DNA of 64,000 nt from Macrostomum lignano (Eukaryota): assembly GCA_002269645.1 (NCBI GenBank), contig NIVC01003808.1, positions 11,940 to 75,939 of the forward strand, read 5' to 3'. Below the pieces are notes generated by a model. It was not told where the DNA came from, searched no databases, and saw only the letters and a program-made list of their open reading frames with translations. The position numbers were made by a program, and so were the translations under genes. Shown one piece after another: positions 1,020 through 25,353 of the stretch (the first letter of the stretch is position 1; every line of letters begins with the position of its first letter).

Positions 1020-1837
1020 ATTTTAGCTGCCTTTATTTTTATAAAATAGCTTGTATATTCGTCTTTGCTACTGAACTGAAAGTAGAAAGCTGTTTTGCTA
1101 AGTAGTCGTATATATGCCCGAGTGAGCATTCTAGTTATAGTAGTATCTGTGAGCGCAGATCGATCAACCTTAGGCATGATTAATCGATAAATTGATTGGC
1201 AAAAATCAAATGACAGTCATTATAATAAGCACTGCTATGGGCACAAACAGACACCAAGATTGGAAGCCAGAAATCATAATTAAGTGGCAAAAGTTTAACT
1301 TATTAAAACTTATTAACGTATTAGCTCACAGCCGAAAACAAGCATAATTAAACGAATGTCAGTATTGAACGTTTATGTAAGAGGGAAACTTGCCAATTAG
1401 TAAAAAATCTGCTTACAGATAAAAATATCATAAAAGATAGTATTACATAAAAGCATAGAATTATAAGCTTAATTAAAATTACTGGAATAGCAGTTTACCC
1501 TCATTTATATTGAATTCTAAATACCAAGAAAAACTCGCATATAAACACGACAGTAGTCACCCATCTTATTAAAAAGTATTCGTTAAAATCTTTAAAAACA
1601 CAATAATCAATACATAGTTTGTGATGTACTTTCTTAAAACTGAAGTTTTTTTCCAGAAAAAAACACTAGACTACTAACAGTAGCGGTATACTTCTAATTT
1701 ATTCGTCTTCTATTTTACTGTTTTCTACTATTATAAACCTAATAATGATCAAGTAATTTGTCGATTTTCTGGTACTATCAGCAATACAAACAGTTTTTAA
1801 AATTGATTTTTTATTCAAAAAGATGGATCGATAATCC

Positions 1838-3188
1838 TTAGGCGGCAGCTCCGCTCAGCTTTTTCAAGGCTCCGACGCCCATCTCCTGGTACTCCTGCCG
1901 GCTAATCCAGAACTTATCGTCGTGATCCTTCATAATATCGGCCAGGATAGCGCCGCCCAGGAACACCATGTGCTTGCGCCTGGGCGGATCCTCGATTCGG
2001 ATTTTAAACTTGCTCAATCGTTCCGTGTCGCCTTTGAGCACCTGCTCCAGGTACAACTGCTTCATTTCCCTCTCTAGCCGGCTGGGCAGACCCGGGTACA
2101 TTGTGGTGCCGCCCGATAGCACAATCTTCTTGTAGAACTCGGGCCTGATGTCCATGTCCGCCTGCTGGATGGTGTTGAACAGCAGTTCCGCCACGCCAAC
2201 CCCGTCTACATCCACCAGGTGAGGCTGGAATAACGCCTCGGGAGCTTGAAAGCGCTCGCCACTTACCTGTGGTGTTTGGGGGGGGGGCAACTGGCGGTTA
2301 ATAAGCTGTTCTAGCTTTACCGTCATCCCATCCCCCTCCTCCCTCTCGTTAACCTCTCCATCTCCCTTCCCTCTCATATCCCTTGCCTCCCATCTGCCTT
2401 CCCTCCCATCTCCCTTCCCTCTTATCTGCCTTCCCTCTAATCTCCCTTCCCTGTCAACTGCCTTTCCTCCCATCTCCCTTCCCTGTCAACTGCCTTTCCT
2501 CCCATCTCCCTTCCCTGTCAACTGCCTTTCCTCCCATCTCCCTTCCCTCCCATCTCCCTTCTCTTTCATATCCCTTTCCCTTTATACCCCTTCCCTTCCA
2601 TCTCCCTTCTCATCCCATTCTCTACACCTCAGAAGAATCTCCATCCGCTCCTCTTGTGTCACATCTCAATCCATCTTCCCAGCGGCCACCCATCGGCTCA
2701 CCTTGATGACGCGGCCATCCGGCAGGGTGTACTTCTCGACCAGCACGGTGGTCTCCAGCGACAGCCGCTCCTCCTGAGCAATATCGTAAGCCACATAGCA
2801 CAGACGCTCCTTCAGCTGACGGATTGTCTCAAAATCAGCGCTAGCATTAAAAGCGTAGCCTCTGAGCAGCAGGAGCTTGATGAGATAGCGCGTGATGTCC
2901 CGGCCGGCAATGTTCAGCCGCTTGGTGAGATGCGGCAATGCGAAGCCGTCGTACACCGGGCAGATGTGGGTGACGCCGTCGCCTGAGTCAACTACAACTC
3001 CAGTGAGCAGGCCTTGAGCATAGAGGGTCAGCACCGCCTGAAATGTATAGTGCAAGGCCACTGCTCGTATTCTAGTGCTGAGGGTCGCAACTCATACACT
3101 GTACATAAGTTTCTACTTTGTACTTTTATTGGAGATGATAAATAGGCTGCTAACTCGCTAACTAACTACCCAACTAACTGACCAAGTG

Positions 3189-3227
<39 letters not shown>

Positions 3228-5624
3228 CACTAACTAACTAACTAACTAACTCACTAACTAACTCACTAACTAACTAACTAACTAACTCACTCACTAACTA
3301 ACTCACTAACTAACTAACTAACTAACTAACTCACTAACTAACTCACTAACTAACTGACTAACAAACAAACAAACAAACAAACAAACTAACTCACTAACTA
3401 ACTAACTAACTAACTAACTGACTAACAAACAAATAAACAAACAAACAAACTAACTAACTCACTAACTAACTAACTAACTGACTAACTGACTAACAAACAA
3501 ATAAACAAACTAACTAACTAACTAACTCACAAACAAACAAACAAACAAACAAACTGACTAACAAACAAATAAACTAACTAACTAACTGTCTGACTAACTA
3601 ACTTACTACTAATAAAGTAAATAACTAACTAATTAACTAACGAGTAAGGTCACAATAACACGCAGAGACTTCACCTGAATAGCCACGTAGACTCCGGCAA
3701 AGTTGTACTTTTCAAACATTGCCTCAATCATGCGCTCCCGGTTCTTAGCCGGGTTCATGGGTGGCTCTGTCAGCAACACCTTGGTGTTCGGACAGTCCAG
3801 GTTCATCTTCTTCGGACCGAAGATGTAGTCGTACAGGTGCAGCATGTCAGTCCAGTTGCTGACTATGCCGTTCTCCATTGGGTAGTTCACCTGCGATGGG
3901 AAGTAAGACAGGCAAATTAGCTGACGTATATCTTTCCCTGCATTATACACTTCGACCATTGTGCTAATCTCGATTCCCATTGTAGAAGTAGAGAGTAGAC
4001 TTCAGTCTTAATGGAACTACAGTTAGAACAACTTCCGGTTCTCGAATCTAATTGGAGATACAGTTAGAACAACTTCTGGTTGTCGAATCTAATTGGAGAT
4101 ACAGTTAGAACAACTTCCGATTCTCGAATCTAATTGGAGATACAGTTAGACCAAGTTCCGATTCTCGAATCTAATTGGAGATACAGTTAGACCAACTTCC
4201 GGTTGTTGAATATAATTGTAGATACAGTTAGAACAACTTCCGGTTGTCGAACCTAATTGGAGATACAGTTAGACCAACTTCCGGTTGTCGAACCTAATTG
4301 GAGATACAGTTAGACCAACTTCCGGTTCTCGAATCTAATTGGAGATACAGTTAGAACAACTTCCGGTTGTCGAACCTAATTGGAGATATAGTTAGACCAA
4401 CTTCCGGTTCTCGAATCTAATTGGAGATACAGTTAGAACAACTTCCGGTTGTTGAACCTAATTGGAGATACAGTTAGAACAACTTCCGGTTGTTGAATCT
4501 AATTGGAGATACAGTTAGAACAACTTCCGATTCTCGAATCTAATTGGAGATACAGTTAGACCAACTTCCGGTTGTTGAATATAATTGTAGATACAGTTAG
4601 AACAACTTCCGGTTGTCGAACCTAATTGGAGATACAGTTAGACCAACTTCCGGTTCTCGAATCTAATTGGAGATACAGTTAGAACAACTTCCGGTTGTCG
4701 AACCTAATTGGAGATATAGTTAGACCAACTTCCGGTTCTTGAATCTAATTGGAGATACAGTTAGAACAACTTCCGGTTGTTGAACCTAATTGGAGATACA
4801 GTTAGAACAACTTCCGGTTGTCGAACCTAATTGGAGATATAGTTAGACCAACTTCCGGTTGTCGAATCTAATTGGAGATACAGTTAGAACAACTTCCGGT
4901 TGTCGAACCTAATTGGAGATACAGTTAGAACAACTTCCGGTTGTCGAGCCTAATTGGAGATATAGTTAGACCAACTTCCGGTTGTCGAATCTAATTGGAG
5001 ATACAGTTAGAACAACTTCCGGTTGTCGAACCTAATTGGAGATACAGTTAGAACAACTTCCGGTTGTTGAACCTAATTGGAGATATAGTTAGAACAACTT
5101 CCGGTTCTCGAATCTAATTGGAGATACAGTTAGACCAACTTCTGGTTGTCAAATCTAATTGGAGATACAGTTAGACCAACTTCCGGTTGATAAAGCTGAA
5201 TTCCGAAGATAAACCCTACTTCCCTACTTCCGGTCTGACAGATTTGACTACAGTTGGACTGCTTCCGTTTATAAAAAAATCGCCATATTCAATACTACTT
5301 CCGATTGTCGCAAAAGGCTATTCATTACTAGGTCCAGTCCCGGCTTCCGGAATTTAAAGAGAGCTCTCGCCACTGTCACATTAAGAAGCGAGTGAAACGA
5401 AAAAAAAACATTTTTACCTGCAGCATCTGTCGAACTTCCGCAGCCTCGTCGCCCACCATCAGGTCGCGAATCTCCACGTCGCCAATGCGCGACGAGCTGC
5501 GCAGAATTGGCCGGCCAACCAGAGACGGGAAAATGTGCTCGGGATAATTCGCGCCGGCCCGGCCGCACTTGACAAATCCCGTGCCATTGTCGCATACAAC
5601 CACGTGTCTGCCTTTGCTATCCAT
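1838..5624 (-). CDS. ACTR2: Actin-related protein 2 (Arp2/3 complex subunit), 4 exons, ~395 aa
   Basis: Exons 5624-5418, 3890-3675, 3037-2702 and 2266-1838, all with GT-AG phase-0 junctions and joining in frame. Arp2 motifs: [74 protein letters not shown]. Confidence 0.96.
2326..2640. repeat. CT-rich minisatellite in Arp2 intron 3
   Basis: Repeated ctcccatctcccttccct(gtcaactgcctttc) units. Confidence 0.8.
3150..3640. repeat. (ACTA)n/(ACAA)n microsatellite in Arp2 intron 2
   Basis: Long run of actaactaacta with ctca/acaa variants. Confidence 0.92.
4012..5189. repeat. 41-bp minisatellite (~28 copies) in Arp2 intron 1
   Basis: Unit GGAGATACAGTTAGAACAACTTCCGGTTGTCGAACCTAATT; period 41 read at 4021/4062. 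Confidence 0.95.
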
Positions 5625-5764
5625 GCTGGCCTGATTTACAATTTGTAGAGCTTCATGAATTTTAGCATTTAGAAATGGAATCAGATGCGCACGCCGTTAA
5701 TAACTTTCTATTTCTACTAATAGTAGCAAAGAGAGAAATTTTATTGAAATATTTACAATTTTAA

Positions 5765-6745: not shown

Positions 6746-7516
6746 AAATCGATCATGAGCAAAGACCTTGGCTTATATGCCTCTAAGATGATAAATGGAT
6801 TGATATCTCAACAGTGATGCAACGATGAAGCGTTTATTGATAAGAAAGCATTGAAGTCCGCTATGTAAGCATGTTTATGCACATATATTTGAATATTTAG
6901 CATAAATATAATGGCCTTGAATACCGCCCTCCATTGAAAACCTCTACTGATCTACTCGGCAGTAAAAAATCACAATTGCTGACAGACTTTGAGAAAAAAT
7001 AAAGGTTATAAATTACAATCATAATCTATTTATTCAACAGGAAATCAGTTTAATTAAACATTTTATATAGCCTCACAGATTTGGTCCGGGTTAGCAAGGT
7101 AGGAATAAAATAATACGATAATGCAATGCAGAAAGTTTATCGTAGCAACCGGAGCGCTTCTATCTGAGCCGTCATCATTTTGAATCATATTTTCAATTAT
7201 TTTATTTATATCAATCTAAAGCCAATTAAGTCAATAAGCCAATAATAGATTACTAATAGTAATAACCTTTGATTTTTCAACGGAATCGTTAACTGACTCT
7301 CAAGTTTAAGCGCTGACAGTTAATTACAGCAACAGAGACTGGATAATAATGGTGGATTTAAACACAGTTGAGCCGGTATAAACAAATAAACAACAGCGTA
7401 TTGCCAGTGTCAGTAACAAACTAGATTTCATTATGGATGCCTTGTGCGAAAAAATTAATAGTTAATTAGCACGAGCGAGTGAACTGCCATTGAAATAACT
7501 GGATCCATTTTTATCC

Positions 7517-7775
7517 CAACAAATTCAAAATCCCATTCTCAACAAATTCAAAATCCCATTCTCAGCAAATTTGAAATCCCAATTCTCAACAAATTAAAAA
7601 TCCCATTTTCAACAAATTTGAAATCCAATTTCTAAACAACTTTAAAATCCCATTCTCAGCAAATTTAAAATCCCATTCTCAACAAATTTGAAATCCCATT
7701 CTCAACAAATTTGAAATCCCATTTTCAACGAATTCGAAATCCCATTTCTCAACAAATTTCAAATCCCATTCTCAA
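7517..7775. repeat. ~23-bp minisatellite (Ral distal 3' UTR region)
   Basis: Unit AAATCCCATTCTCAACAAATT(C/T)(A/G), about 11 copies. Confidence 0.85.
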
Positions 7776-7934
7776 CGCGCAGGAACTACAAATTTTGAAT
7801 CCTGATCTCAAACTGAGGACAGAGCATTGATTTGATCACTTGGACAAAAATAGCAACACAATGGCGAATAGAAAAAAACTGATTTTTAAAAAATCGCACA
7901 AAAGGCTGGCCTTCTTTTTAAAGAAAAAAACGCG

Positions 7935-8048
7935 TCAAAGAATTTCGCATCTGCGCTTTTTCGGCTTCTTGCTGCGTCCGCCGCCGTTTCCGGTGACGGC
8001 CGATTGCTGCTTCCGGTGATGAATCTCGGTCAGCAGGTCGTAGAAAGC
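7935..8048 (-). CDS. RALA: Ral alternative terminal exon 4b (polybasic + CaaX): AFYDLLTEIHHRKQQSAVTGNGGGRSKKPKKRRCEIL*
   Basis: The first AG after a TTAAT branch-like motif and pyrimidine tract (AAG at 8051-8049) gives a phase-0 join to exon 3 (...ENVDK). It encodes the Ras-family alpha5 helix, a polybasic stretch and CEIL-stop. Not in the ORF track. Confidence 0.85.
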   Translation of the reverse strand, partial: AFYDLLTEIHHRKQQSAVTGNGGGRSKKPKKRRCEIL

Positions 8049-8419
8049 CTTGGTTACAATTCGATTAATAAAAGAAGGTTGAGAAAATTTATATTTCATT
8101 TTCAACAAACCGACAATGCGTAAAATTTAGATTGCGAATCAAAATTGACTGCTAATAGGCTTTCATCGCTACTAACGGTAGTGCTATTTGAAAAGCTATT
8201 TAGACTAAATTTTCGGGTTGAATAATTTTTTTCTAAAATCATGTAATTGAATTTGAAATACGTAATCTCACTGTGCATGCAATTTAAGTTTGCGAAGCTA
8301 TACAAAAATCAATTCTCTGAAATTTTGATTGCAGAGTTTCCACCGTGGAGAGGGAAGAGGGAAGGTGTGGAAGGAGATGAAGGGGGCTTGACGAGGATTT
8401 GGAAACCAGAGAAACGGGT

Positions 8420-8790
8420 GAGGTAGGGCGTCAGGCGATGAGGGTGAAATATGAGGGAAGGTAGGAGGGTGTGCGGGAGGGGATGATGAGGGGTGAGGGA
8501 GAGTAGGAGGGTAGAGGCAGAGGATGAGGGAGGGTAGAGGGAGGGGATAAGGAGGGTAGAGGGAAGGTAGAGGCAGGGTATGAGGGAGGGGATGATGAAG
8601 GGTGAGGGAGGGTAGGAGGGTAGAGGCAAGGGATGAGGGAAGGTAGAGGGAGGGGATAAGAGAGGGTAGAGGGAGGGGATAAGGAGGGTAGAGGGAAGGT
8701 AGAGGCAGGGTATGAGGGAGGGGATGATGAAGGGTGAGGGAGGGTAGGAGGGTAGAGGCAGAGGATGAGGGAGGGTAGAGGAAGTGCAAG
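8420..8790. repeat. Purine-rich (GA) low-complexity tandem repeat between Ral exons 4a and 4b
   Basis: Repeated gagggagggtagagg/ggatgagggag units. Confidence 0.8.
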
Positions 8791-9096
8791 AGGGAGAATG
8801 AATGAGAGAGAAAGAGATAAACAGGTACAGAAGGAAAATAGATGGGGCGAAAACAATGTATGACGGATGGAGAACTAATAAATATCACTATTAAGAGCGA
8901 TTGCTTCTTAACTACTGATTGATTCTGTAGTCATCAGTCTGGTAGACAATATGATAATAATATATAAATGAATTTATTGCGCCAGCAAACAGCTCTCGAA
9001 TCAAAATATATAATACAATAGCTGTTTGCTAAGCTGGCTATAGTACTATAACAAAATAGACTATTGTCGGAGTGTGAGAGTGTGCGTAGGCTGCGC

Positions 9097-11219
9097 TCAA
9101 AGCAGGCTGCAGCAGCATTTGGCAGACGAGCCGCCACCCTGCAGAGCAGCCATGCCAGACTGCTGCCTGTTCAGCTGCGGCCGGCCGCGCTTGTGGTCCA
9201 GCACGGAGCGGATCAGGCCGAAGAAGGCCTTCGTTGTGTTGCGTGTAATTAATTTTATTGTTTTGCATTGCGCGTTACATTTTTACAAAATAAAATGCTT
9301 GCACTGCCTCTAATGAGTAGGAATATTCGGACAGCACCTACCAATGTTGAAAAATAATAATAAATGGACAAAAATCATTACACTGTCACGGGGTCATGAG
9401 ACTGTCGGGAGTGATGAGATTTGTCTCGGAGTGATGAGATTTGCCTGAGAGTGATGAGATTGTCTGGGAGTGATGAGACTGTCTGGGAGTGATGAGACTG
9501 TCTGGGAGTGATGAGACTGTCTGGGAGTGATGAGATTTGTCTGGGAGTGATGAGACTGTCTGGGAGTGCGGAGACTGTCGAGACTGTCGGAGTGACGAGA
9601 CTGTCTGGGAGTGCGAAGACTGTCGGAGTGACGAGACTGTCTGGGAGTGCGGAGACTGTCGGAGTGACGAGACTGTCTGGGAGTGCGGAGACTGTCGGAG
9701 TGACGAGACTGTCTGGGAGTGACGAGACTGTCGGAGTGACGAGACTGTCTGGGAGTGCGGAGACTGTCGGAGTGACGCGAATGACGAGAACAAAGATGAG
9801 CGGCCCATCTAAAAGCGCAATCAATGGCTCACCTTGTCGACATTCTCTCTAGTTTTGGCCGACGTTTCCAGGTAGGGGATTCGCCAGGCTTCGGCCCGGG
9901 CCTCGGCCTCCCTGGATTGCACCTGCCGGCCGTCGGTGAGGTCGCTCTTGTTGCCAACCAGCAGCATGGGGATGGACTCGTCGCCTTTTACTCGGATGAT
10001 CTGCTCTCTGCGCGATGGATGCAGTGAGGAGGGAGTAAATTAAATAAGCTTTGCCTGGGAGGGTGGCTGGAAGGTAAGGAGTGTTCGGGAGGGTAAGGAG
10101 TGTTCAGGAGGGTAAGGAGAGTGTCCGGGAGGGTAAGGAGGGTTCGGGAGGGTAAGGAGTGAGAGAGCGGGCACTGCACAGGAATAGAAATCGATGGCCC
10201 CAGAGACGCGAACTGACCTTACCTGAACTCATTAGTGGCGGCAAAGGACTCAGGATCGGTGAGCGAGAACACGCATAGGAAGCCCTCTCCGCCGCGGAAA
10301 TAATTGTCCCGAATGCTGGCATAGTCCTCCTGGCCAGCCGTGTCCAGGATGTCAATGTGCACCTCGGTGCCCTCCAGGGTGACCTTCTTTCGATACATAT
10401 CGGCTTTGGTTGGCTCGTAGTCTTCAACGAACTGGGCGCGGTTGAGACGGAGTTTGACAGAAATTGGCCTAACTATTCGTACATATAGCAATGAATGATG
10501 CTCAAGTAGTGCCACAAGTGCATGAGTAACTACCCTAAAAGTATCAGATTGTATGATATCATGCAGATTGCTTAGCAGGAGTGATCTTCTAAAGAGTGGG
10601 TAGAGTGACTAGGAGAGTGGGTAGAGTGACTAGGAGAGTGGGTAGAGTGACTAGGAGAGTGGGTAGAGTGACTAGGAGAGTGGGTAGCTTCTAGAGAGTG
10701 GGTAGAGTGACTAGGAGAGTGGGTAGAGTGACTAGGAGAGTGGGTAGCTTCTAGAGAGTGGGTAGAGTGACAAGGAGAGTGGGTAGAGTGACTAGGAGAG
10801 TGGGTAGCTTCTAGAGAGTGGGTAGAGTGACTTGGGGAGTGGGTCGAGTACTCGGGAGAGTGGGCAGAATGCCCGGGGGGATTGGGTAGAGTTCCCGGAA
10901 GAGTGAGTAGAGTGCCCGGGAATGGGTAGAGTGACTAGAAGAGTGGGTAGAGTGCCCTAGAAAATAAATATAGTGGCTAGTTATAAATAAGTAATCGACG
11001 AGAATTTAGGACGAGATTACGGGGAGTCTGGAAGACAGCTAGAGCGGACAGTGATAATGTACATGCACAAAATTGCAACTTCAGCAGGCCGACCGTAACG
11101 CTCACCTCGTCGTACATGAACTGCAGCGTAAGGGCGCTTTTACCAACGGCGCCGCTGCCAACCATAATGATTTTGTGCACAGGCTGCGATGAGCTGGTCC
11201 CACTCTTCTGCTTGGACAT
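9097..11219 (-). CDS. RALA: Ras-like GTPase Ral, 4 exons, 209 aa with exon 4a
   Basis: Exons 11219-11106, 10431-10223, 10007-9833 and 9228-9097 (4a) join in frame. Motifs: [29 protein letters not shown] (Ral effector loop), [31 protein letters not shown]. The C-terminus is ...AKCCCSLL*. RalA vs RalB orthology is not resolvable (single invertebrate Ral). Confidence 0.93.
9385..9780. repeat. 19-bp / 36-bp minisatellite in Ral intron 3
   Basis: Unit GAGTGATGAGACTGTCTGG, later a 36-bp composite unit. Confidence 0.9.
10060..10165. repeat. Short GA-rich tandem repeat in Ral intron 2
   Basis: Repeated ggagggtaaggagtgttc-like units. Confidence 0.7.
10595..10960. repeat. 21-bp minisatellite in Ral intron 1
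   Basis: Unit GGAGAGTGGGTAGAGTGACTA. Confidence 0.9.
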
Positions 11220-11444: not shown

Positions 11445-12050
11445 TTCACAGGTGGAGTCCCTATTAGAGTGGGTAGAGTTTTCTATGAGTGTGGTAGAGT
11501 ACATGGGAGTGGGTAGAGTCCAAAGGAGAGTGAGTAGAGTCCTTAGGAGAGTGGGTAGAGCCACTAGGAGGGTGAGTAGAGTCCTTGGGAGCGTGGGTAG
11601 AGCCCCTAGGAGGGTGAGTAGAGTCCCTAGGAGAGTGGGTAGAGTCCCTAGGAGAGTGGGTAGAGTCCCTAGGAGAGTGAGTAGAGTCCCTAGGAGAGTG
11701 GGTAGAGTCCCTAGGAGAGTGGGTAGAGTCCCTAGGAGAGTGGGTAGAGTCTATAGGAGAGTGAGTAGAGTCCCTAGGAGAGTGGGTAGAGTCCCTAGGA
11801 GAGTGAGTAGAGTCCCTAGGAGAGTGGGTAGAGTCTATACCGGTAGGAGAGTGAGTAGAGTCCCTAGGAGAGTGGGTAGAGTCCCTAGGAGAGTGGGTAG
11901 AGTCTATAGGAGAGTGAGTAGAGTCCCTAGGAGAGTGGGTAGAGTCTATAGGAGAGTGAATAGTCCCTAGGAGGGTGAGTAGAGTCCCTAGAAGAGTGAG
12001 TAGTCCGTAGGAGAGTGAGTAGAGTCCCTAGGAGTGTTTAGTCCCTAAGA
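11445..12050. repeat. 21-bp minisatellite upstream of Ral (same family as the intron 1 array)
   Basis: Unit GGAGAGTGGGTAGAGTCCCTA. Confidence 0.92.
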
Positions 12051-12522
12051 GTGGGGTTAGAGAGTGGGCGCCAAAGTACTAGGGCTCGATTCCTGGGCGT
12101 CAGCTGTACACTACTCTTTTATAGACGTTAATCAAACAAATAAAAGACAGGCAGCCCAAGAATTCAATCCAAGAAAAAGGCGAGAACAGCAACAGCCAAT
12201 TCGGACGCACACGGAGAGACGGCACAATTAAGCGATGAAGTTAATCTCGCGAATTGCGCTCTCTGCGTGTGCGCTTGAATCATCATCACTTGACCAGCAG
12301 TTCTGCATCAATGAGCATCATTGCTTTATTAAATTTATATATAGTTACTAAACTAATCTGGTTAACAAAGTCACAGGGAAGTATAGGCTCGAAATTGGGA
12401 TAAAGTGAGTCATAGAAGCATAGCAGAGAGAAAAAATTCAGGCGTTACACATGCAGTTTGAATATTTTTACTATCATCATTTTATCGTGTGTAAGAAACC
12501 GTGCTTGCTTATGATTAGAAGT

Positions 12523-13719
12523 TCACTTCTTCTTGGCGGTGAGACCTGCGCCAGCGTTGAACTTGAAGAAGATAATATCCCCGTCCTGCACCACATAGTC
12601 CCTGCCCTTCTGCTTGTATTTGCCTTTGGCTTTCACCTCGCTCTCCGAGCCGCACTCTTTATAATCTTCGAAGCTCATAACCTCGGCCATGATGAAGCCA
12701 TTCTCCATGTCGGAGTGAATCTTGCCGGCAGCCTGAGGCGCTTTAGTATTTAGCGGAATTGTCCAAGCTTTCACTTCGTCTTTGCCGGCGGTAAAAAAGT
12801 ACTGCAGCTGCAGAGCCTTGTAGCCGGTTGAGATGATTTTGCCCAGAGCCGAGCTCACCCCGTGCTCCTTAGAGAACTCAGCCCTCTGCTCATCGGTCAT
12901 GTCCGCCCATTTAAACTCCAGCTCAGCGGACAGCGGGATCACTGCGGCTCCCGGATCGTGCTGGTCAATCCACTCCTTGATCTTTGGCAACCATTTGTTC
13001 TTCTTCCGAATGAAGTCCTTCTCGCTCAGGTTAACCAGGTACACGATTGGCTTAGCGGTGATGAACAGGTGCTCGTTGAGCAAATCGATTTCTTTGTCAT
13101 TCCACTGCTCGAACCGAAGCGACCGTTTCTCCTCGACAACGATCCGGTGCACCTTCTGGAAGGCTTCAAACAGCGCCGTTTTGGACTTGTCGCCGCCGCG
13201 GGTGACCACCTTCTCCAGCTTCTCAAACTCCTTCACAATGTAGGCCTCATCTTTCAGCCGGAGCTCCTCGGAGATGATTTCAAGATCGCGGATGGGATCT
13301 ACTTCGCCTTCAATGTGGGTGACCTCCTGGCAGTCGAATGCGCGCACCATGTGGAACAGCGCGTCAACGCCGCGGATATTGCTAAGGAAAGCGTTGCCAA
13401 GGCCCTGGCCTTCGCTGGCGCCTTTAACTAGGCCTGCAATGTCCCAGACATTGAGATAGGCGGGCACCCTGCTGGCAGGCTTCCAGTGCTCGCACAGCCA
13501 TTCCCACCTGTCGTCTGGCACAGCCACCCGGCTCTCGTGCGGATCAATAGTGCAAAATGGGAAATTCTCGGCCGGAGCCGAGCTCTTCGTCAGCACGTTG
13601 AAGAATGTACTTTTGCCAACGTTGGGCAGGCCGACAATGCCGATCTTGAGGTTGCTGCCCATCCGGCCAATGATTGGCGGGTTTTTCGGCTCATCTGCTC
13701 CCTTCTTCTTTGGCGGCAT
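12523..13719 (-). CDS. OLA1: Obg-like ATPase 1 (YchF family), intronless, 398 aa
   Basis: Single ORF with [14 protein letters not shown] (G1), NFPFCTIDP (G2), [20 protein letters not shown] (G3), the NLSE G4 variant typical of OLA1, and a TGS domain ([17 protein letters not shown]...[10 protein letters not shown]). AATAAA on the minus strand at ~12324-12329. Confidence 0.97.
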
Positions 13720-13939
13720 TCTGCTGTATCAGGCAGATTTACTCTCGAGTTCTGGCTGGCTGTCTAGTCTGTCTCACTCGCTAACTCTGAACTGGACCTG
13801 CTGCTGCCTGACCTGCTTAGGCGCTGAAAAAGTTCAATCCGTACTTTTATTTTGTTGAATTCAATTTTAATGCTCTTAAGACTAAAATAGCAACGCAAAG
13901 CCAGTCGGAGAATATGGAAAGGTGGCAAAGAACCAGCAA

Positions 13940-14700
13940 CTGAGGATCTGGGAGGCTGGCCCAGCAACTGAGAATCTGAGAGGCTGGCACAGCAACTGAG
14001 AATCTGGGAGGCTGGCACAGCAACTGACACTCTAGGAGGCTGGCCCAACAACTGGGGATCTGGGAGGCTGGCCCAGCATGTAAAGATCTGGGAGGCTGGC
14101 CCAGCATGTAAAGATCTGGGAGGCTGGCCCAGCATGTAAAGATCTGGGAGGCTGGCCCAGCATGTAAAGATCTGGGAGGCTGGCCCAGCATGTAAAGATC
14201 TGGGAGGCTGGCCCAGCATGTAAAGATCTGGGAGGCTGGCCCAGCATGTAAAGATCTGGGAGGCTGGCCCAGCATGTAAAGATCTGGGAGGCTGGCCCAG
14301 CATGTAAAGATCTGGGAGGCTGGCCCAGCATGTAAAGATCTGGGAGGCTGGCCCAGCATGTAAAGATCTGGGAGGCTGGCCCAGCATGTAAAGATCTGGG
14401 AGGCTGGCCCAGCATGTAAAGATCTGGGAGGCTGGCCCAGCATGTAAAGATCTGGGAGGCTGGCCCAGCATGTAAAGATCTGGGAGGCTGGTCCAGCAAC
14501 TGAGGATCTGGGAGGCTGGCCCAGAAACTGAGGATCTGGGAGGCTGGCCTAGCAACTGACACTCTGGGAGGCTGGCCCAGCAACTGGGGATCTGGGAGGC
14601 TGGCCCAGCAACTAAGAATCTGGCCCAGCAACTGACACTCTGGGAGGCTGGCCCAGCAACTGGGAATCTGGCCCAGCAACTGAGGGGATCTGGGAGGCTG
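13940..14700. repeat. 28-bp minisatellite upstream of OLA1 (family A)
   Basis: Unit GGCTGGCCCAGCATGTAAAGATCTGGGA, with CAGCAACTGAGG variants at the edges. Confidence 0.95.
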
Positions 14701-18300: not shown

Positions 18301-21300
18301 CGCCGCAGCCGCCCTGGCCTGCTCAAAAGCCAGAAATCGAACGTCGCGCCGTTTCCGAAGCTCCAGCAGGCCGGGCAGCTGCCAGGGCAACCTGTCCAGA
18401 GCGGAGGCGTGGGCGTACACCACGAGCTGCTGCTGCTGCTGCTGCTGCAGTTGCTGAATGCCATCCCGTCGGGGTCCACGGCACTGCAGCAGCAGGGAGG
18501 CGTGCAGCGGATCGCACTGCCGATGTCCGAGGCTGGTCAGGCGGCTGGCCAGATCTGCGCACTCCGCACTGTCCGAGATGCCGACCACGTGGAAGAATGG
18601 CGGCGGTGGAGGAGGAGGCGGAGGCGGCGGCGGCACAATGGACTGCTGCTGTGGCTGCAGTAGCGCAGATAGCAGAGGAGTAGGATAGTACTAATTAGAT
18701 GACGAGACATTTAGCCTTAATAATACAGTCATAGTTACTCCTGCTGTTTACCACAAAACTGCGTTAATTTTTGCTGAGGTTTCTTTTATAGGTAGGTCGC
18801 ATTTTTGGTAAAAAAAAGTAAGTTTAAGTTCCATAGTTTCTGTAATCCATATCTCATTAGTAGTATTAAATAATTTTATAATTTTTGGGATTCTCGTGAG
18901 TTCACTTGAAAGGTCAAGGGTTCGATTCCTGATTCTACTCGAGAGTTCACCCAGCTGTAAAATGGGTAACCAGCATTAGCTGGGGTAACTGAGGGTGTGA
19001 GTGGCGAACCCCCCAGTCCTTGGACTGAACAGCCGTACGCAGCCTTCAGATGCGACGATGCGCCACGCAATAGCTGCGGCTGAGCTGTAGGTTGCACATA
19101 TGGCCCAATTGGGGCAGGTTTATCAATTATTAATATTATTATTTTGGACAGTCTTGGCCCAGCGGCTAGCAACTGACACTCTTCGAGGCTGGCCCAGCAA
19201 CTGAGGATCTGGGAGGCTGACCCTGAAACTGAGGATCTGGGAGGCTGACCCTGAAACTGAGGATCTGGGAGGCTGACCCTGAAACTGAGGATCTGGGAGG
19301 CTGACCCTGAAACTGAGGATCTGGGAGGCTGACCCTGAAACTGAGGATCTGGGAGGCTGACCCTGAAACTGAGGATCTGGGAGGCTGACCCTGAAACTGA
19401 GGATCTGGGAGGCTGACCCTGAAACTGAGGATCTGGGAGGCTGACCCTGAAACTGAGGATCTGGGAGGCTGGCTTAGCAACTAAGGATCAGGGAGGCTGG
19501 CTCAGCAACTGAGGATCAGGGAGGCTGGCCTAGCAACTAAGGATCAGGGAGGCTGGCCCAGCAATTGAGGATCAGGGAGGCTGGCCTAGTAACTAAGGAT
19601 CAGGGAGGCTTAAATTTAAAATTCAAGACTGCTTATTAATTGTCAAACTTGAATAATCCGGATTCTGCATTCTGCAACTATTGTGGTTCAGAAAAAGACT
19701 CAGCAGTGTTAAGGGTAGGGCAGAGAATTTATTGACTAGAAAAAAGGTTCAGACATACCGCATGGCTGTAATAGGCGGCAAGGAAGCTGTGATCGATCGA
19801 GCCGGCTTGCCTAGCAACGGTTGCTAGGGCGGCGGACGCCCGCTGCTGCTGCTGCTGCTTAGCGACGGCCAGAGCGGCCAGCAGTCTGGTTTGCATCTGA
19901 GCGGACAGAGGCGGCGGCTGCTGCGGCTGAGACGGTGGCGCCTCATCGTCAAGGAAAGCATCGGCCAGGCCAATCTTGTAGCTGCGGATCATCGCGTCCT
20001 GGCGTTCCCGATAGGTCAGCGCGGAGCCGCCCGCGGCCGGCTCAGCAGCGGCAGGCGGCGGCGGTGGCTGCTGCCGGGGCATTGCGAGCTGGGAATTATT
20101 GTGATGGAGATGAGGCGGTTCAGGCGACGGCCGGAGCCTGGGCGGCAAGCAGCCTGCAGCAGGGGGTAAGGAGATTGAAGCAGCTGGGAGCGTTGCGTGG
20201 GCACTGAAGGGCTTGCTAATCTAAGGGATAGAAATGAACTAACATGGATACATGTGGGCAGGTTATTAGGAAGACGCTGCTTATAGTAGTATTCGGGATT
20301 TCAGAACGCAAGTCTTCGTATAGGGGGTATTAAGAGATTTTTACTTAAAGTACCTTTACGACTTTCGGTATTTACGTTGGGAGATTTTCGGAATCAGCTG
20401 TATTGCGGGGTTTTATGAATCAGCTGAATTGGGAGATTTTGGGAATTAGCTGAATTGGGAGATTTTGGGAATCAGCTGAATTGGGAAATTTTGGGAATTA
20501 GCTGAATTCGGACTTTAGGAATTAGCTGAATTGGGGGACTTTGGGAATTAGCTGAATTGGGGGATTTTAGGTATGAGCTGAATTGGGAAATTTTTGGAAT
20601 CAGCTAAAGTGGGAGATTTTGGGAAATTGTGTGAATTTGGGATATTTCGGGAATTAGCTTAATTGGGGGATTTTGGGAATTAGGTGAATTGCACGAGGGG
20701 GGGTTCGGAATCAGCTGAATTATGAGATTTAGGAACAGTTGAGTTGGGAGATTTTGAGAATCAGCTAAATAAGGTTTTTCCTTTAAAAATGAGTTAGTTT
20801 TTTAAATCAGAGCTGTGCCAACTCAGAACTCACACTTCTGCTGAGCAATGCTTCCAGCAGCGGCAGATTCGAAAAGAATATCGCTGGGCCACTGCAAACT
20901 GGGCGCCGGCGACAAAGGTCGACGCAGAACTTGCCGTTGACAGGCGGTCATCGTCCAGTCGGACAGACCCTTTGACAGACACCGGCTGGCCGAGAACCGC
21001 CTCGGTGGCAGTGGCGGCAGGGCTCCAATCGACGCCGCTGTCAAATTCGGCAAACAGCCGTCAGCGGCTCTTAGAAACCGGCGTGCAGTCGAGCGCAGTC
21101 GATGCCGCAGTCGACGAATTCGCCGACGAACAATCGAGCCAGACTTGGCGGCGCCGTCAATCCCAGCGTCAACATCGTCGACTACATCGAACTTGTCAAA
21201 GCCGATGCTCACAGGACTGCCGACATTGCCGCCACCGCTGCCGCTGTTATCATCGCCGTCAAAATCGTCGTCGTCGCTTGTCAAAGACGCGGCCGCCGTC

Positions 21301-24300
21301 AGAGAGTCTGGATAGAGTTGGTTGATCGCCAACTGCTCGTTGCTAAGGACGCCACCGCCGCCCGCGTAGAAACCGTCCAGGTAGCGCAGTAGAGCGAAGC
21401 CGACGTTGCGAACGCTTCTTGAGCGACGCTTGGGGTCTGCGGTAAGGTCCGGAAATGTGGACTGCCAGACTAGTGAAACATGGACTACCAGACTAGTGAA
21501 ACATGGACTGCCAGACTAGTGAAACATGGATTGCAAGACTAGTGAAACATGGATTGCCAGACTAGTGAAACATGGATTGCCAGACTAGTGAAACATGGAT
21601 TGCCAGACTAGTGAAACATGGATTGCTAGACTAGGGAAATATGGATTGCTAGACTAGGGAAATATGGATTGCTAGACTAGGGAAATATGGATTGCTAGAC
21701 TAGGGAAATATGGATTGCTAGACTAGGGAAATATGGATTGCTAGACTAGGGAAATATGGATTGCTAGACTAGGGAAATATGGATTGCTAGACTAGGGAAA
21801 TATGGATTGCTAGACTAGGGAAATATGGATTGCTAGACTAGGGAAATATGGATTGCTAGACTAGGGAAATATGGATTGCTAGACTAGGGAAATATGGATT
21901 GCTAGACTAGGGAAATATGGATTGCTAGACTAGGGAAATATGGATTGCTAGACTAGGGAAATATGGATTGCTAGACTAGGGAAATATGGATTGCTAGACT
22001 AGGGAAATATGGATTGCTAGACTAGGGAAATATGGATTGCTAGACTAGGGAAATATGGATTGCTAGACTAGGGAAATATGGATTGCTAGACTAGGGAAAT
22101 ATGGATTGCTAGACTATTCAAACGACTATCAAAAGCTCGCCATACCGCCGCTATCCAACGTGCCCCGCTCCATCAGCCACTCGGTCAGGGCTGCCTGAGC
22201 GGTGCGGCCGAGCTGACGCCGCAGGTGTAGCGGCAGCGACTCCTCCAACAGGGCGGCGTTGGCCCGTCGTGTTAGTCGAGACGCCGCATCCACTGGCAGA
22301 CGGCGAAGACGTCGACGTGGGGGAAAATGGCGAGACTGCTGAGAAGGCTGCGACTGGGATTCAGCTGGAATGGTGAGGTCAGCGTGGGTGAAAATTAAAG
22401 TGCAGATGCAGCAGCCGATTGACAATCCAACTATCAGAGTAGAGTGACAATCTGACTACAGAGTGACAATCTGACTATCAGAGTGACAATTTGACTATCA
22501 GAGTGACAATTCGACTACGAGAGTGACAATCTGACTATCAGAGTGACAATTTGACTATGAGAGTGACAATTTGACTATCAGAGTGACAATCTGACTATCA
22601 GAGTGACAATTTGACTATCAGTGACAATCTGACTATCAGAGTGACAATTCGACTATGAGAGTGACAATCTGACTATCAGAGTGACAATTTGACTATGAGA
22701 GTGACAATTTGACTATCAGAGTGACAATCTGACTATCAGAGTGACAATCTGACTATGAGAGTGACAATTCGACTATGAGAGTGACATCTGACTATCAGAG
22801 TGACAATTTGACTGTCAGAGTGACAATCTGACTATCAGAGTGACAATCTGACTATGAGAGTGACAATTTGACTATCAGAGTGACAATTTGACTATCAGAG
22901 TGACAATTTGACTATGAGAGTGCAGTTTGACTATCAGAGTGACAATCTGACTATCAGAGTGACAATTTGACTATCAGAGTGACAATTTGACTATGAGAGT
23001 GACAATCCGACTATCAGAGTGACAATTCGACTATGAGAGTGACATCTGACTATCAGAGTGAGAATTTGACTATGAGAGTGACAATTTGACTGTCAGAGTG
23101 ACAATCTGACTATCAGAGTGACAATCTGACTATCAGGACTAAAATCTGGTGAGTTTTAACTTCAATAGTATACACCTGGCGCATACCTGAGCAGTCGGCA
23201 GTGGACTGAGTATTATCCCGCAAAATGACGGCCAGATTCTGTTTAAAATCTGCCAGCGCCAATTCAGCCTGGGATCTGTCACCGGAATCGGAAGCGATAG
23301 CAGCGCGACCCGAGCCGGCGGATTGGGCCAGGCCACGGCCAAGACGGCGAACTTCTGACACCAGACTGGGCGACTTGGCGAGGCAGGTGGACAGCAGGCT
23401 GTCTGAAGAGGGTTAGGGTGATGCTGCAGATAAGCTTTCATGTGAGCAGTGAGGATCTGGGAGTGCGGCAGGTGGCCCAGCAACTGAGGATCTGGGAGTG
23501 CGGCAGGTGGCCCAGCAACTGAGGATCTGGGAGTGCGGCAGGTGGCCCAGCAACTGAGGATCTGGGAGTGCGGCAGATGACCCAGCAACTGAGGATCTGG
23601 GAGTGCGGCAGCTGGCCCAGCAACCGAGGATCTGGGAGTGCGGCAAGTGGCCCAGCAACTGAGGATCTGGGAGTGCGGCAGATGACCCAGCAACTGAGGA
23701 TCTGGGAGTGCGGCAGGTGACCCAGCAACTGAGGATCTGGGAGTGCGGCAGGTGGCCCAGCAACCCAGGATCTGGGAGTGCGGCAGGTGCTCAGCAACTG
23801 AGGATCTGGGAGTGCGGCAGGTGGCCCAGCAACTGAGGATCTGGGAGTGCGGCAGCTGGCTCAGCAACTGAGGATCTGGGAGTGCGGCAGGTGGCCCAGC
23901 AACTGAGGATCTGGGAGTGCGGCAGGTGACCCAGCAACTGAGGATCTGGGAGTGCGGCAGGTGGCCCAGCAACTGAGGATCTGGGAGTGTGGCAGCTGGC
24001 CCAGCAACTGAGGATCTGGGAGTGCGGCAGGTGACCCAGCAACTGAGGATCTGGGAGTGCGGCAGGTGGCCCAGCAACTGAGGATCTGGGAGTGTGGCAG
24101 CTGGCCCAGCAACTGAGGATCTGGGAGTGCGGCAGGTGGCCCAGCAACTGAGGATCTGGGAGTGCGGCAGGTGGCCCAGCAACTGAGGATCTGGGAGTGC
24201 GGCAGGTGGCCCAGCAACTGAGGATCTGGGAGTGCGGCAGGTGGCCCAGCAACTGAGGATCTGGGAGTGCGGCAGGTGACCCAGCAACTGAGGATCTGGG

Positions 24301-25353
24301 AGTGCGGCAGGTGGCCCAGCAACTGAGGATCTGGGAGTGTGGCAGCTGGCCCAGCAACTGAGGATCTGGGAGTGCGGCAGGTGACCCAGCAACTGAGGAT
24401 CTGGGAGTGCGGCAGGTGGCCCAGCAACTGAGGATCTGGGAGTGTGGCAGCTGGCCCAGCAACTGAGGATCTGGGAGGAATAAAAGTACTCAAAGTAGGC
24501 CACTCACCAACAGACGCAGGTAAGTCGATGCTGTCATCATCGGAGCCGCTGCTCACTTGAGCCTCCAAGTTGCACGCAGCGGTGAAGCGGTCGTCAATGA
24601 AGCTCTGCAGTTGGCTCACCGCTGTAGTTGGCGAAATTTCTGCATTGTTGAAAAAGTGAAAATAAAGCAGTTGCAGCACCATTGTGTAGGAGAATCCATC
24701 TTAGATAAGTAGGGACCTGAGCGGAGTGAACTATAGCTCATTCGGTAAATATAGGGACCTGAGCGGAGTTAACTATTGCTCACTCGGTAAAAATAGGGAC
24801 CTGAGCGGAGTACTGGCATAAATAGAACAATGCATTAAAACTACATATATTGAACACCTGCATCTGTTCCATTGACTTCAGAAGCTTTATCAGCCGGTTT
24901 GCTGCTAGCAGATGCATTGGCAACAACAACAGCAGAAGCAGTATCAGAAGAGGCTGGCAAGCACCGCGTCAGAGCCACCTGAGTCTCCGATAGCAGACAA
25001 TCTGCCAAATCGTCAAGCGATGAATCTCCATTTCCAGCATCCTCATTGCTGGCATTGTTATTAAACTCCTCGGCGGCCTTGCAAACTTCATCAAGCTGCT
25101 TAGCTAGGCTAGCCAGATTCAGCTTAGCAATCTTGTCCACCGAGGCGCAAATGGCAGCTTCACTGGGCTGCCCATCGCTAGATGACGGTGCCAGTTTCCG
25201 CTTCCGGTTGCCATTTCCCGTCTGGCTGGAACTGCCATCCAGGCCAGATTGGGTCAGCCGGTTCAAAAAGTTGGACACTTCATCGGCTGCTGTGGCCGAG
25301 GCTGCATCAACCTCGGGCATGTCCGGGCCATTGCCCAGCTTGGAGGTGAGCAT
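15324..25353 (-). CDS. TASOR/FAM208-like protein (C-terminal alpha/beta + PIN-like region), 9 exons, ~1040 aa
   Basis: Exons 25353(first Met)-24858, 24639-24508, 23402-23187, 22364-22146, 21436-20834, 20153-19759, 18654-18282, 17311-16721 and 15424-15324 are all GT-AG with consistent phases (3126 nt). C-terminal segments (FFHVVG..LASRLTSLGHRQCDP; QLPGLLELRKRRDVRFLAF; FPVTGGPCLLLGDPL; RWPIGIRARDLRRL; LLGCVDGLAELQTRLRCRHREFLLL; EFGCETATVGQLL) resemble, in order, my recollection of the TASOR/TASOR2 C-terminus. The exon structure is well supported; the family call rests on a by-eye comparison only. Confidence 0.7.
15470..16640. repeat. 21-bp minisatellite with higher-order blocks in the last intron of the TASOR-like gene
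   Basis: Unit CCTGTCTGTCACCTGCTGTTT, with recurrent longer blocks containing accattatgc. Confidence 0.95.
17375..18250. repeat. 28-bp minisatellite (family A)
   Basis: Unit GGCTGGCCCAGCAACTGAGGATCTGGGA. Confidence 0.95.
18695..18825. repeat. Dispersed repeat fragment shared with the MITE at 46091-46356
   Basis: gacgag.catt...acagtcatagttactcc.gc.gtttacc...gcgttaattttg...gtcgcattttt aligns with 46201-46325. Confidence 0.75.
18905..19143 (+). mobile_element. 5'-truncated tRNA-derived SINE with CORE-like central motif
   Basis: B-box GGTTCGATTCC (18919-18929), CCCAGCTGTAAAATGGGTA resembling CORE-type SINE cores, and a (TAT)n-like 3' tail. Confidence 0.6.
19160..19610. repeat. 28-bp minisatellite (family A variant)
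   Basis: Unit GGCTGACCCTGAAACTGAGGATCTGGGA. Confidence 0.93.
20395..20770. repeat. 26-bp degenerate minisatellite
   Basis: Unit GGGAATTAGCTGAATTGGGAGATTTT. Confidence 0.85.
21455..22115. repeat. 23-bp minisatellite
   Basis: Unit GGATTGCTAGACTAGGGAAATAT, nearly perfect; the first copies are GTGAAACAT variants. Confidence 0.95.
22425..23135. repeat. 20-bp minisatellite
   Basis: Unit GAGTGACAAT(C/T)TGACTATCA. Confidence 0.95.
23445..24477. repeat. 35-bp minisatellite (family A plus 7 bp)
   Basis: Unit GGCCCAGCAACTGAGGATCTGGGAGTGCGGCAGGT; the spurious ORFs repeat every 35 aa. Confidence 0.95.
24700..24812. repeat. 42-bp tandem repeat (~2.5 copies)
   Basis: tagggacctgagcggag at 24710, 24752 and 24794. 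Confidence 0.85.

Follow-up and report, generated by a model that had tools for sequence, protein, structure and literature searches.

The Ral gene of the flatworm Macrostomum lignano probably has two alternative last exons, which would equip its product with one of two different membrane anchors. The gene lies on the minus strand of contig NIVC01003808.1 (locus L002) and comprises four exons within the stretch of 64,000 nucleotides analysed here, which we refer to as the window and to which positions refer unless another locus is named. Its annotated isoform ends in a canonical polybasic tail encoded by a distal terminal exon (exon 4b). Between exon 3 and exon 4b there is a further terminal exon (exon 4a), unannotated in GenBank, whose tail carries a cluster of cysteines. 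On balance, we favour the view that exon 4a is a real and used alternative last exon, as judged from its sequence, its phase and its conservation. It is a further example of a switch that is already annotated in insect Ral and not a new principle.

Anatomy of the gene and its two terminal exons

Exon 1 (11106..11219, on the minus strand like all exons of the gene) encodes MSKQKSG...FMYDE, the same N-terminus as in PAA49705.1, and ends at a GTGAGC donor. Exon 2 (10223..10431, donor GTAAGG) encodes switch I, switch II and the DTAGQE motif, and exon 3 (9833..10007) encodes NKSD, ETSAK and the closing ...ENVDK; both lie behind CAG acceptors. The GTGAGC donor of exon 3 is common to two terminal exons, each of which is in phase 0 and stands behind an AAG acceptor with an ATTAAT motif about 15-20 nt upstream. 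The proximal one, exon 4a (9097..9228), encodes the remainder of helix alpha5, a Gln/Gly-rich linker, KCC, the CaaX box CSLL and a stop (...KCCCSLL), and a candidate poly(A) signal for this isoform, AATAAA at 8973..8978, follows 119 nt past the stop. The distal one, exon 4b (7935..8048), encodes AFYDLLTEIHHRKQQSAVTGNGGGRSKKPKKRRCEIL and a stop, ending in the canonical polybasic tail RSKKPKKRR-CEIL; its candidate poly(A) signals fall in the region 7029..7206 (AATAAA at 7206-7201 and 7034-7029, ATTAAA at 7054-7049). Exons 1-3 joined to exon 4b give a protein of 203 residues identical to GenBank PAA49705.1 and PAA94545.1, and joined to exon 4a they give one of 209 residues. The gene identifier at this locus is Mlig018345, and there are two further genomic copies. 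An original prediction made on this DNA had given the coordinates and peptides of exons 4a and 4b and the end of exon 3 exactly, and was equally correct in describing phase-0 terminal exons behind AAG acceptors with a TTAAT-type motif and a separate AATAAA for each.

The same prediction had assigned the gene to the Ral family, and comparison with known structures supports this assignment. Ral-A and Ral-B account for all of the ten best PDB sequences (258-281 bits), with Drosophila and human Ral structures as the best matches, and the next are H- and K-Ras at no more than 191 bits (the best non-Ral match being H-Ras, at 191 bits). The G1-G5 nucleotide-binding motifs including ETSAK are present, switch I is of the Ral type when set against YEPTKADSYRKK, and both CaaX boxes, CSLL in exon 4a and CEIL in exon 4b, end in leucine as is typical of geranylgeranyltransferase I substrates. 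Two residues depart from near-invariant Ral positions: Ala24 in place of Gly (codon at 11150-11148, minus strand, within GSGAVGKS), which is equivalent to Ras Gly13, and Met50 in place of Ser (codon at 10398-10396, minus strand, within ADMYRKK of switch I). Gly and Ser occupy these positions in at least 90% of 49 aligned Ral proteins, among them the M. lignano paralogue P0006. It may be that this Ral copy, besides carrying an additional exon, is unusual in its GTPase cycle or its effector interface.

Several lines of evidence identify exon 4a as a diverged copy of a Ral terminal exon in the right phase. A loose terminal-exon pattern, consisting of a helix start, an open frame and a CaaX box plus stop with an AG in front, had no matches besides true Ral terminal exons, and hence no false positives, when both strands of 550 kb of real DNA were searched; when the 1784 nt separating exon 3 from exon 4b were shuffled 5000 times, it arose in three of the shuffled sequences. 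With either tail, a match to the Pfam Ras profile extends over positions 1-161 of 162 (185.1 vs 186.3 bits), and in the AlphaFold model of the 4a isoform a continuous helix spans residues 161-181 across the exon junction (predicted local distance difference test scores of 76 and 86 for the blocks) and is followed by a disordered tail. The proposal that the terminal exon had been duplicated is thus upheld at the level of sequence, in that exon 4a completes the G domain and ends in a CaaX box with a final Leu and two extra cysteines, while exon 4b is the canonical polybasic form. The likeness between the two exons is confined to about the first six residues (AF(F/Y)xL), and because little can be aligned past the helix start the duplication must be old; the frame of exon 4a is nonetheless still open, and its CaaX box, stop, AG acceptor and AATAAA have been retained. 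It also forms a sharp island of high G+C content (0.66, rising to 0.82 at third codon positions) in an AT-rich intron whose flanking sequence stands at 0.33-0.39, with a codon bias like that of exons 1-3 (third-position G+C of 0.74). Frames are also open on the opposite strand of the 4a region; a plus-strand reading found no support and was rejected.

The two tails differ in their second membrane signal. In exon 4b, seven of the nine residues before the CaaX cysteine are Lys or Arg. In exon 4a, two extra cysteines adjoin the CaaX cysteine and there is a single Lys in the 15 residues ahead of the cysteine cluster. The description of the 4a tail as non-basic needs some qualification, since a KRGR..R patch lies directly after the helix. 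In sequence, the gene shows two features of an anchor switch, namely terminal exons in the same phase that each complete alpha5 and bring their own hypervariable region, CaaX box and stop, with different second membrane signals.

CaaX boxes ending in Leu direct geranylgeranylation, and cysteines adjoining a prenylated cysteine are common sites of palmitoylation. Against this background we envisage that the terminal exon and its acceptor region were duplicated in tandem long ago to produce two alternative last exons, and that the exon 3 donor (9833) would be spliced to one of two acceptors. Use of the weak proximal AAG, with cleavage past the AATAAA at 8978, would yield the 209-residue Ral with the tail KCC-CSLL, in which the CaaX cysteine is predicted to be geranylgeranylated and the two neighbouring cysteines are candidates for palmitoylation. 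Use of the distal AAG would yield the annotated 203-residue Ral with the tail RSKKPKKRR-CEIL, for which geranylgeranylation and a polybasic anchor are predicted. The G domain would be complete with either exon, because each supplies the C-terminal half of helix alpha5. We infer from sequence the use of exon 4a, as well as which isoform would be dominant, which lipids each tail would carry and any difference in localisation between the two.

Conservation of exon 4a and other explanations for it

The assembly carries three copies of the Ral locus (L001, L002 and L003), and their comparison supports the conclusion that exon 4a is conserved like a coding exon. It is intact and 100% identical in all three, with 0 substitutions in 132 nt, whereas its flanks show 16 substitutions in 393 ungapped columns (the probability of none in exon 4a being about 0.004). 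The remaining coding exons differ at 5 of 612 positions, unique intron sequence adjoining the exons is about 4% different and also contains indels, and the AATAAA at 8978-8973 is kept in three of three copies. The use of exon 4a is also favoured by insect Ral genes, described below, in which an analogous pair of polybasic and cysteine-rich exons occupies this junction.

Four observations weigh against the use of exon 4a. The power of the conservation test is limited by how recently the three copies were duplicated. The AAG acceptor of exon 4a is weak, its polypyrimidine tract being almost absent. M. lignano also has a more canonical Ral paralogue (P0006, locus L004; NIVC01000023.1, gene Mlig009726), which has a single terminal exon and no 4a-like exon and whose last intron (12588-13415) is almost wholly one tandem array of a AATCCTCAAATCCCAAAATCCTCAAGCCCG-like unit. 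Finally, the junction between exons 3 and 4a is absent from the transcripts and proteins found by exact look-up, word-indexed and HMMER searches. The 209-residue isoform had no exact match in a collection of 15 billion sequences, word-indexed searches returned no 4a-tailed protein whether the query was the full 4a isoform, only its tail or exon 3 plus exon 4a, and 5.8 billion protein clusters held no product with the 4a tail other than a chimeric model, discussed below. This lack of a product is, however, weak evidence. The annotated 4b isoform is itself known from genome annotations only and from no transcript assembly, and TACO was run at --isoform-frac 0.75 to assemble the transcripts behind the GenBank annotation, with filtering afterwards (PMC5730564), a procedure that would drop a minor isoform.

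These same observations, apart from the recency of the copies, are what one would expect if exon 4a were a relic of the exon duplication, unused or spliced only as noise, in a gene that effectively makes the polybasic isoform alone; the presence of only the 4b isoform in the annotation points the same way. We consider this explanation rather unlikely. A neutral relic of such age should have lost its frame, its CaaX box, its stop or its third-position G+C bias, yet exon 4a keeps all of them, and it has accumulated no substitutions among the three copies against a difference of about 4% in its flanks. The weight of the annotation is in turn reduced by the discarding of minor isoforms in the pipeline that produced it.

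Alternatively, exon 4a could be used as a cassette, included between exon 3 and exon 4b so that exon 4b becomes 3′ untranslated region and both isoforms share one poly(A) region. The KRAS arrangement is of this cassette type, and the protein outcome would be the same as with alternative last exons. Such a cassette is less likely because the stretch from the 4a stop to its AATAAA at 8978 contains no GTRAG donor; ahead of exon 4b the sole such site is at 8271, far past that poly(A) signal, and the signal is itself conserved in all three copies. We regard the KRAS4A-style cassette as improbable.

It is more improbable still that exon 4a is part of a different transcription unit, such as a read-through or chimeric transcript that includes the Arp2 gene downstream. 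This idea draws on the sole real match to the 4a tail in a HMMER search of 1.84 billion representatives, UniProt A0A1I8JS33 ('Actin-related protein 2' of M. lignano; P0205), which starts exactly at the first 4a codon and spans 9228-9039 joined to 5657-1841 on the minus strand, so that it runs past the 4a stop into the 3′ flank and then joins Arp2 coding sequence from window position 5657 (the Arp2 ATG is at 5623). Transcriptional units of M. lignano are, moreover, often polycistronic precursors (PMC5730564). The model nevertheless requires the frame to change three times relative to the window, as is typical where an older assembly contains indel errors, and it continues across a stop that all three Mlig_3_7 copies keep intact; exon 4a itself is plainly a Ral exon, carrying alpha5 and a CaaX box in phase with exon 3. 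On account of the frame changes and the read-through we rejected A0A1I8JS33 as an indication of a separate gene, and we read it as a chimeric model built on an older assembly prone to indels. All that it shows is that the 4a acceptor was accepted by some pipeline.

Tail switches in other Ral genes and in related GTPases

The original prediction had taken such an arrangement to be new for Ral, and here it does not hold. Among the 120 best homologues there are about 25 RefSeq 'Ral-a isoform X2' proteins, from Diptera, Hymenoptera, Lepidoptera and Artemia, with non-basic tails containing adjacent cysteines, of the CCxxL type; HCCQLL, RCCILL, KCCNIL, NCCNIL and SCCILF are among them. The tails usually known for Ral are polybasic. 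Corresponding exon pairs can be placed in three insect genomes, each with a proximal polybasic and a distal Cys-Cys (CC) exon: in Bactrocera oleae (L005, CM090310.1) at 19639-19752 and 22756-22857, in Odynerus spinipes (L006) at 12423-12536 and 13714-13815, and in Plutella xylostella (L007) at 21974-22084 and 24785-24901. A comparison with an annelid is provided by Capitella teleta (L009, KB306751.1), which has a polybasic exon at 13444-13575 and a second polybasic exon at 14324-14434. In all four loci, the terminal exons are in phase 0 after ...NVDK, as they are in the window. Two observations concern the annotation of these loci. The only annotated Ral-a product of the B. oleae assembly (P0055) uses the distal CCQLL exon, and the canonical polybasic exon (KKRRLKCTLL) is unannotated inside the last intron of the P0055 gene. 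The second terminal exon of C. teleta follows the annotated one at a distance of about 750 nt; it has a CAG acceptor, encodes VFYDLMRDIRSRKAESEKQTNDKSKKKPKRKKCTIL with a stop and is outside the product P0078. Literature searches returned no description of C-terminal splice isoforms of Ral and no mention of the Mlig gene identifiers.

Arthropod Ral-a and the M. lignano gene resemble one another in using a single gene with tandem exons at the same phase-0 intron, each encoding the end of alpha5, a hypervariable region, a CaaX box ending in Leu and a stop. The insect pair likewise opposes a polybasic tail of the KKRRLKCTLL type to a non-basic tail with adjacent cysteines (HCCQLL, KCCILL, PCCRVL). 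The exon order is reversed, however: insects have the polybasic exon in the proximal and the CC exon in the distal position, whereas in M. lignano the exon encoding three consecutive cysteines is proximal and the polybasic one distal, so exon order does not speak for orthology of exon 4a with the arthropod CC exon. Acceptors are CAG or TAG in insects as opposed to AAG in M. lignano, and exon 4a differs from the insect CC exon in its three cysteines and its longer Gln/Gly linker. When the tails are compared, exon 4b reaches z-scores of 10-20 against polybasic tails, as a canonical Ral tail should, and exon 4a has its best z-scores with CC-type tails (7-9), although these are short peptides whose score is dominated by the cysteines. 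Its helix reads LIRSV where CC-type exons have LIRAV, LIRSI or LIRDI, again over short peptides. The scores hint at orthology of exon 4a with the arthropod CC exons or with the first C. teleta exon, but they are not conclusive for either. In C. teleta, the terminal exons are duplicated in tandem at the same junction as in M. lignano, but their acceptors are CAG (13444 and 14324) and both tails are polybasic, with no Cys-rich variant.

Because of the reversed exon order and the lack of a 4a-like exon in the M. lignano paralogue, we lean towards a flatworm duplication that was independent of the arthropod one. A broader possibility, which we put forward tentatively and regard as rather doubtful, is that the terminal exon of protostome Ral, which is also doubled in C. 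teleta, has been duplicated in tandem recurrently and has converged at least twice on a pair of polybasic and Cys-rich tails, the flatworm switch being one such independent case. If so, these exon pairs would do the job that is done in vertebrates by gene duplication (RALA and RALB) and mixed tails. The vertebrate proteins have the same G domain but come from two genes instead of two exons, and both of their tails (P0004, P0122) combine a basic tract with CCxL.

Related switches are found elsewhere in the Ras superfamily. As in M. lignano Ral, an alternative fourth exon of KRAS encodes the end of the G domain together with the membrane-targeting region, and the resulting forms, 4A and 4B, are distinguished by a palmitoylatable cysteine and a polybasic tract (PMC9663995, PMC11636682). 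KRAS, however, belongs to the Ras subfamily and is farnesylated, whereas the M. lignano Ral tails end in Leu, predicting geranylgeranylation, and exon 4a has its own poly(A) signal. In CDC42, alternative last exons encode either a dibasic tail that is only prenylated or a CC tail that can be both prenylated and palmitoylated (PMC9772827). The canonical and brain isoforms of CDC42 differ from the M. lignano case in being vertebrate members of the Rho family, and in having their CC inside the CaaX box (CCIF).

Genomic setting and implications

The Ral gene is rich in tandem repeats. Minisatellites occur in every intron, in the 5′ flank and in the 3′ untranslated region of exon 4b, with periods of 19-23 and multiples thereof. 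An array of period 19/36 (9396..9777) fills most of the intron between exons 3 and 4a, one of period ~23/132 (8453..8796) separates the 4a poly(A) signal from exon 4b, and further arrays are at 7517-7776, 10069-10161, 10593-10954 and 11451-12034. All are purine-rich on the plus strand, with a GC skew of about +0.38 across 8-12 kb. The 5′-flank and intron 1 arrays have the core AGAGTGGGTAGAGT in common, and array lengths vary among the three genomic copies. In the paralogous locus L004, UniProt A0A1I8JIE3 (P0018) runs a few codons into the tandem array of the last intron.

Gene order is kept in L001, L002 and L003, where a YchF/OLA1-like GTPase gene, Ral and Arp2 follow one another on one strand; in the window the YchF/OLA1-like region is at about 12500-14000 and Arp2 at about 1800-5650, leaving a spacing of about 2.3 kb between Ral and Arp2 on the same strand. 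An EF-hand gene (FSTL1/SPARC-like) that comes next in the order is seen in L001 and L002 only.

The advance described here is incremental, since KRAS and CDC42 have already established the principle and RefSeq records show it for Ral. A switch between polybasic and Cys-rich tails by means of alternative last exons is already implied for invertebrate Ral by database annotations, and it bears on how Ral, in its role in exocyst-dependent traffic, is sorted between endomembranes and the plasma membrane. Should exon 4a be in use, the annotation of M. lignano, a regeneration model in which transgenesis is possible, misses a Ral isoform with a different membrane anchor.

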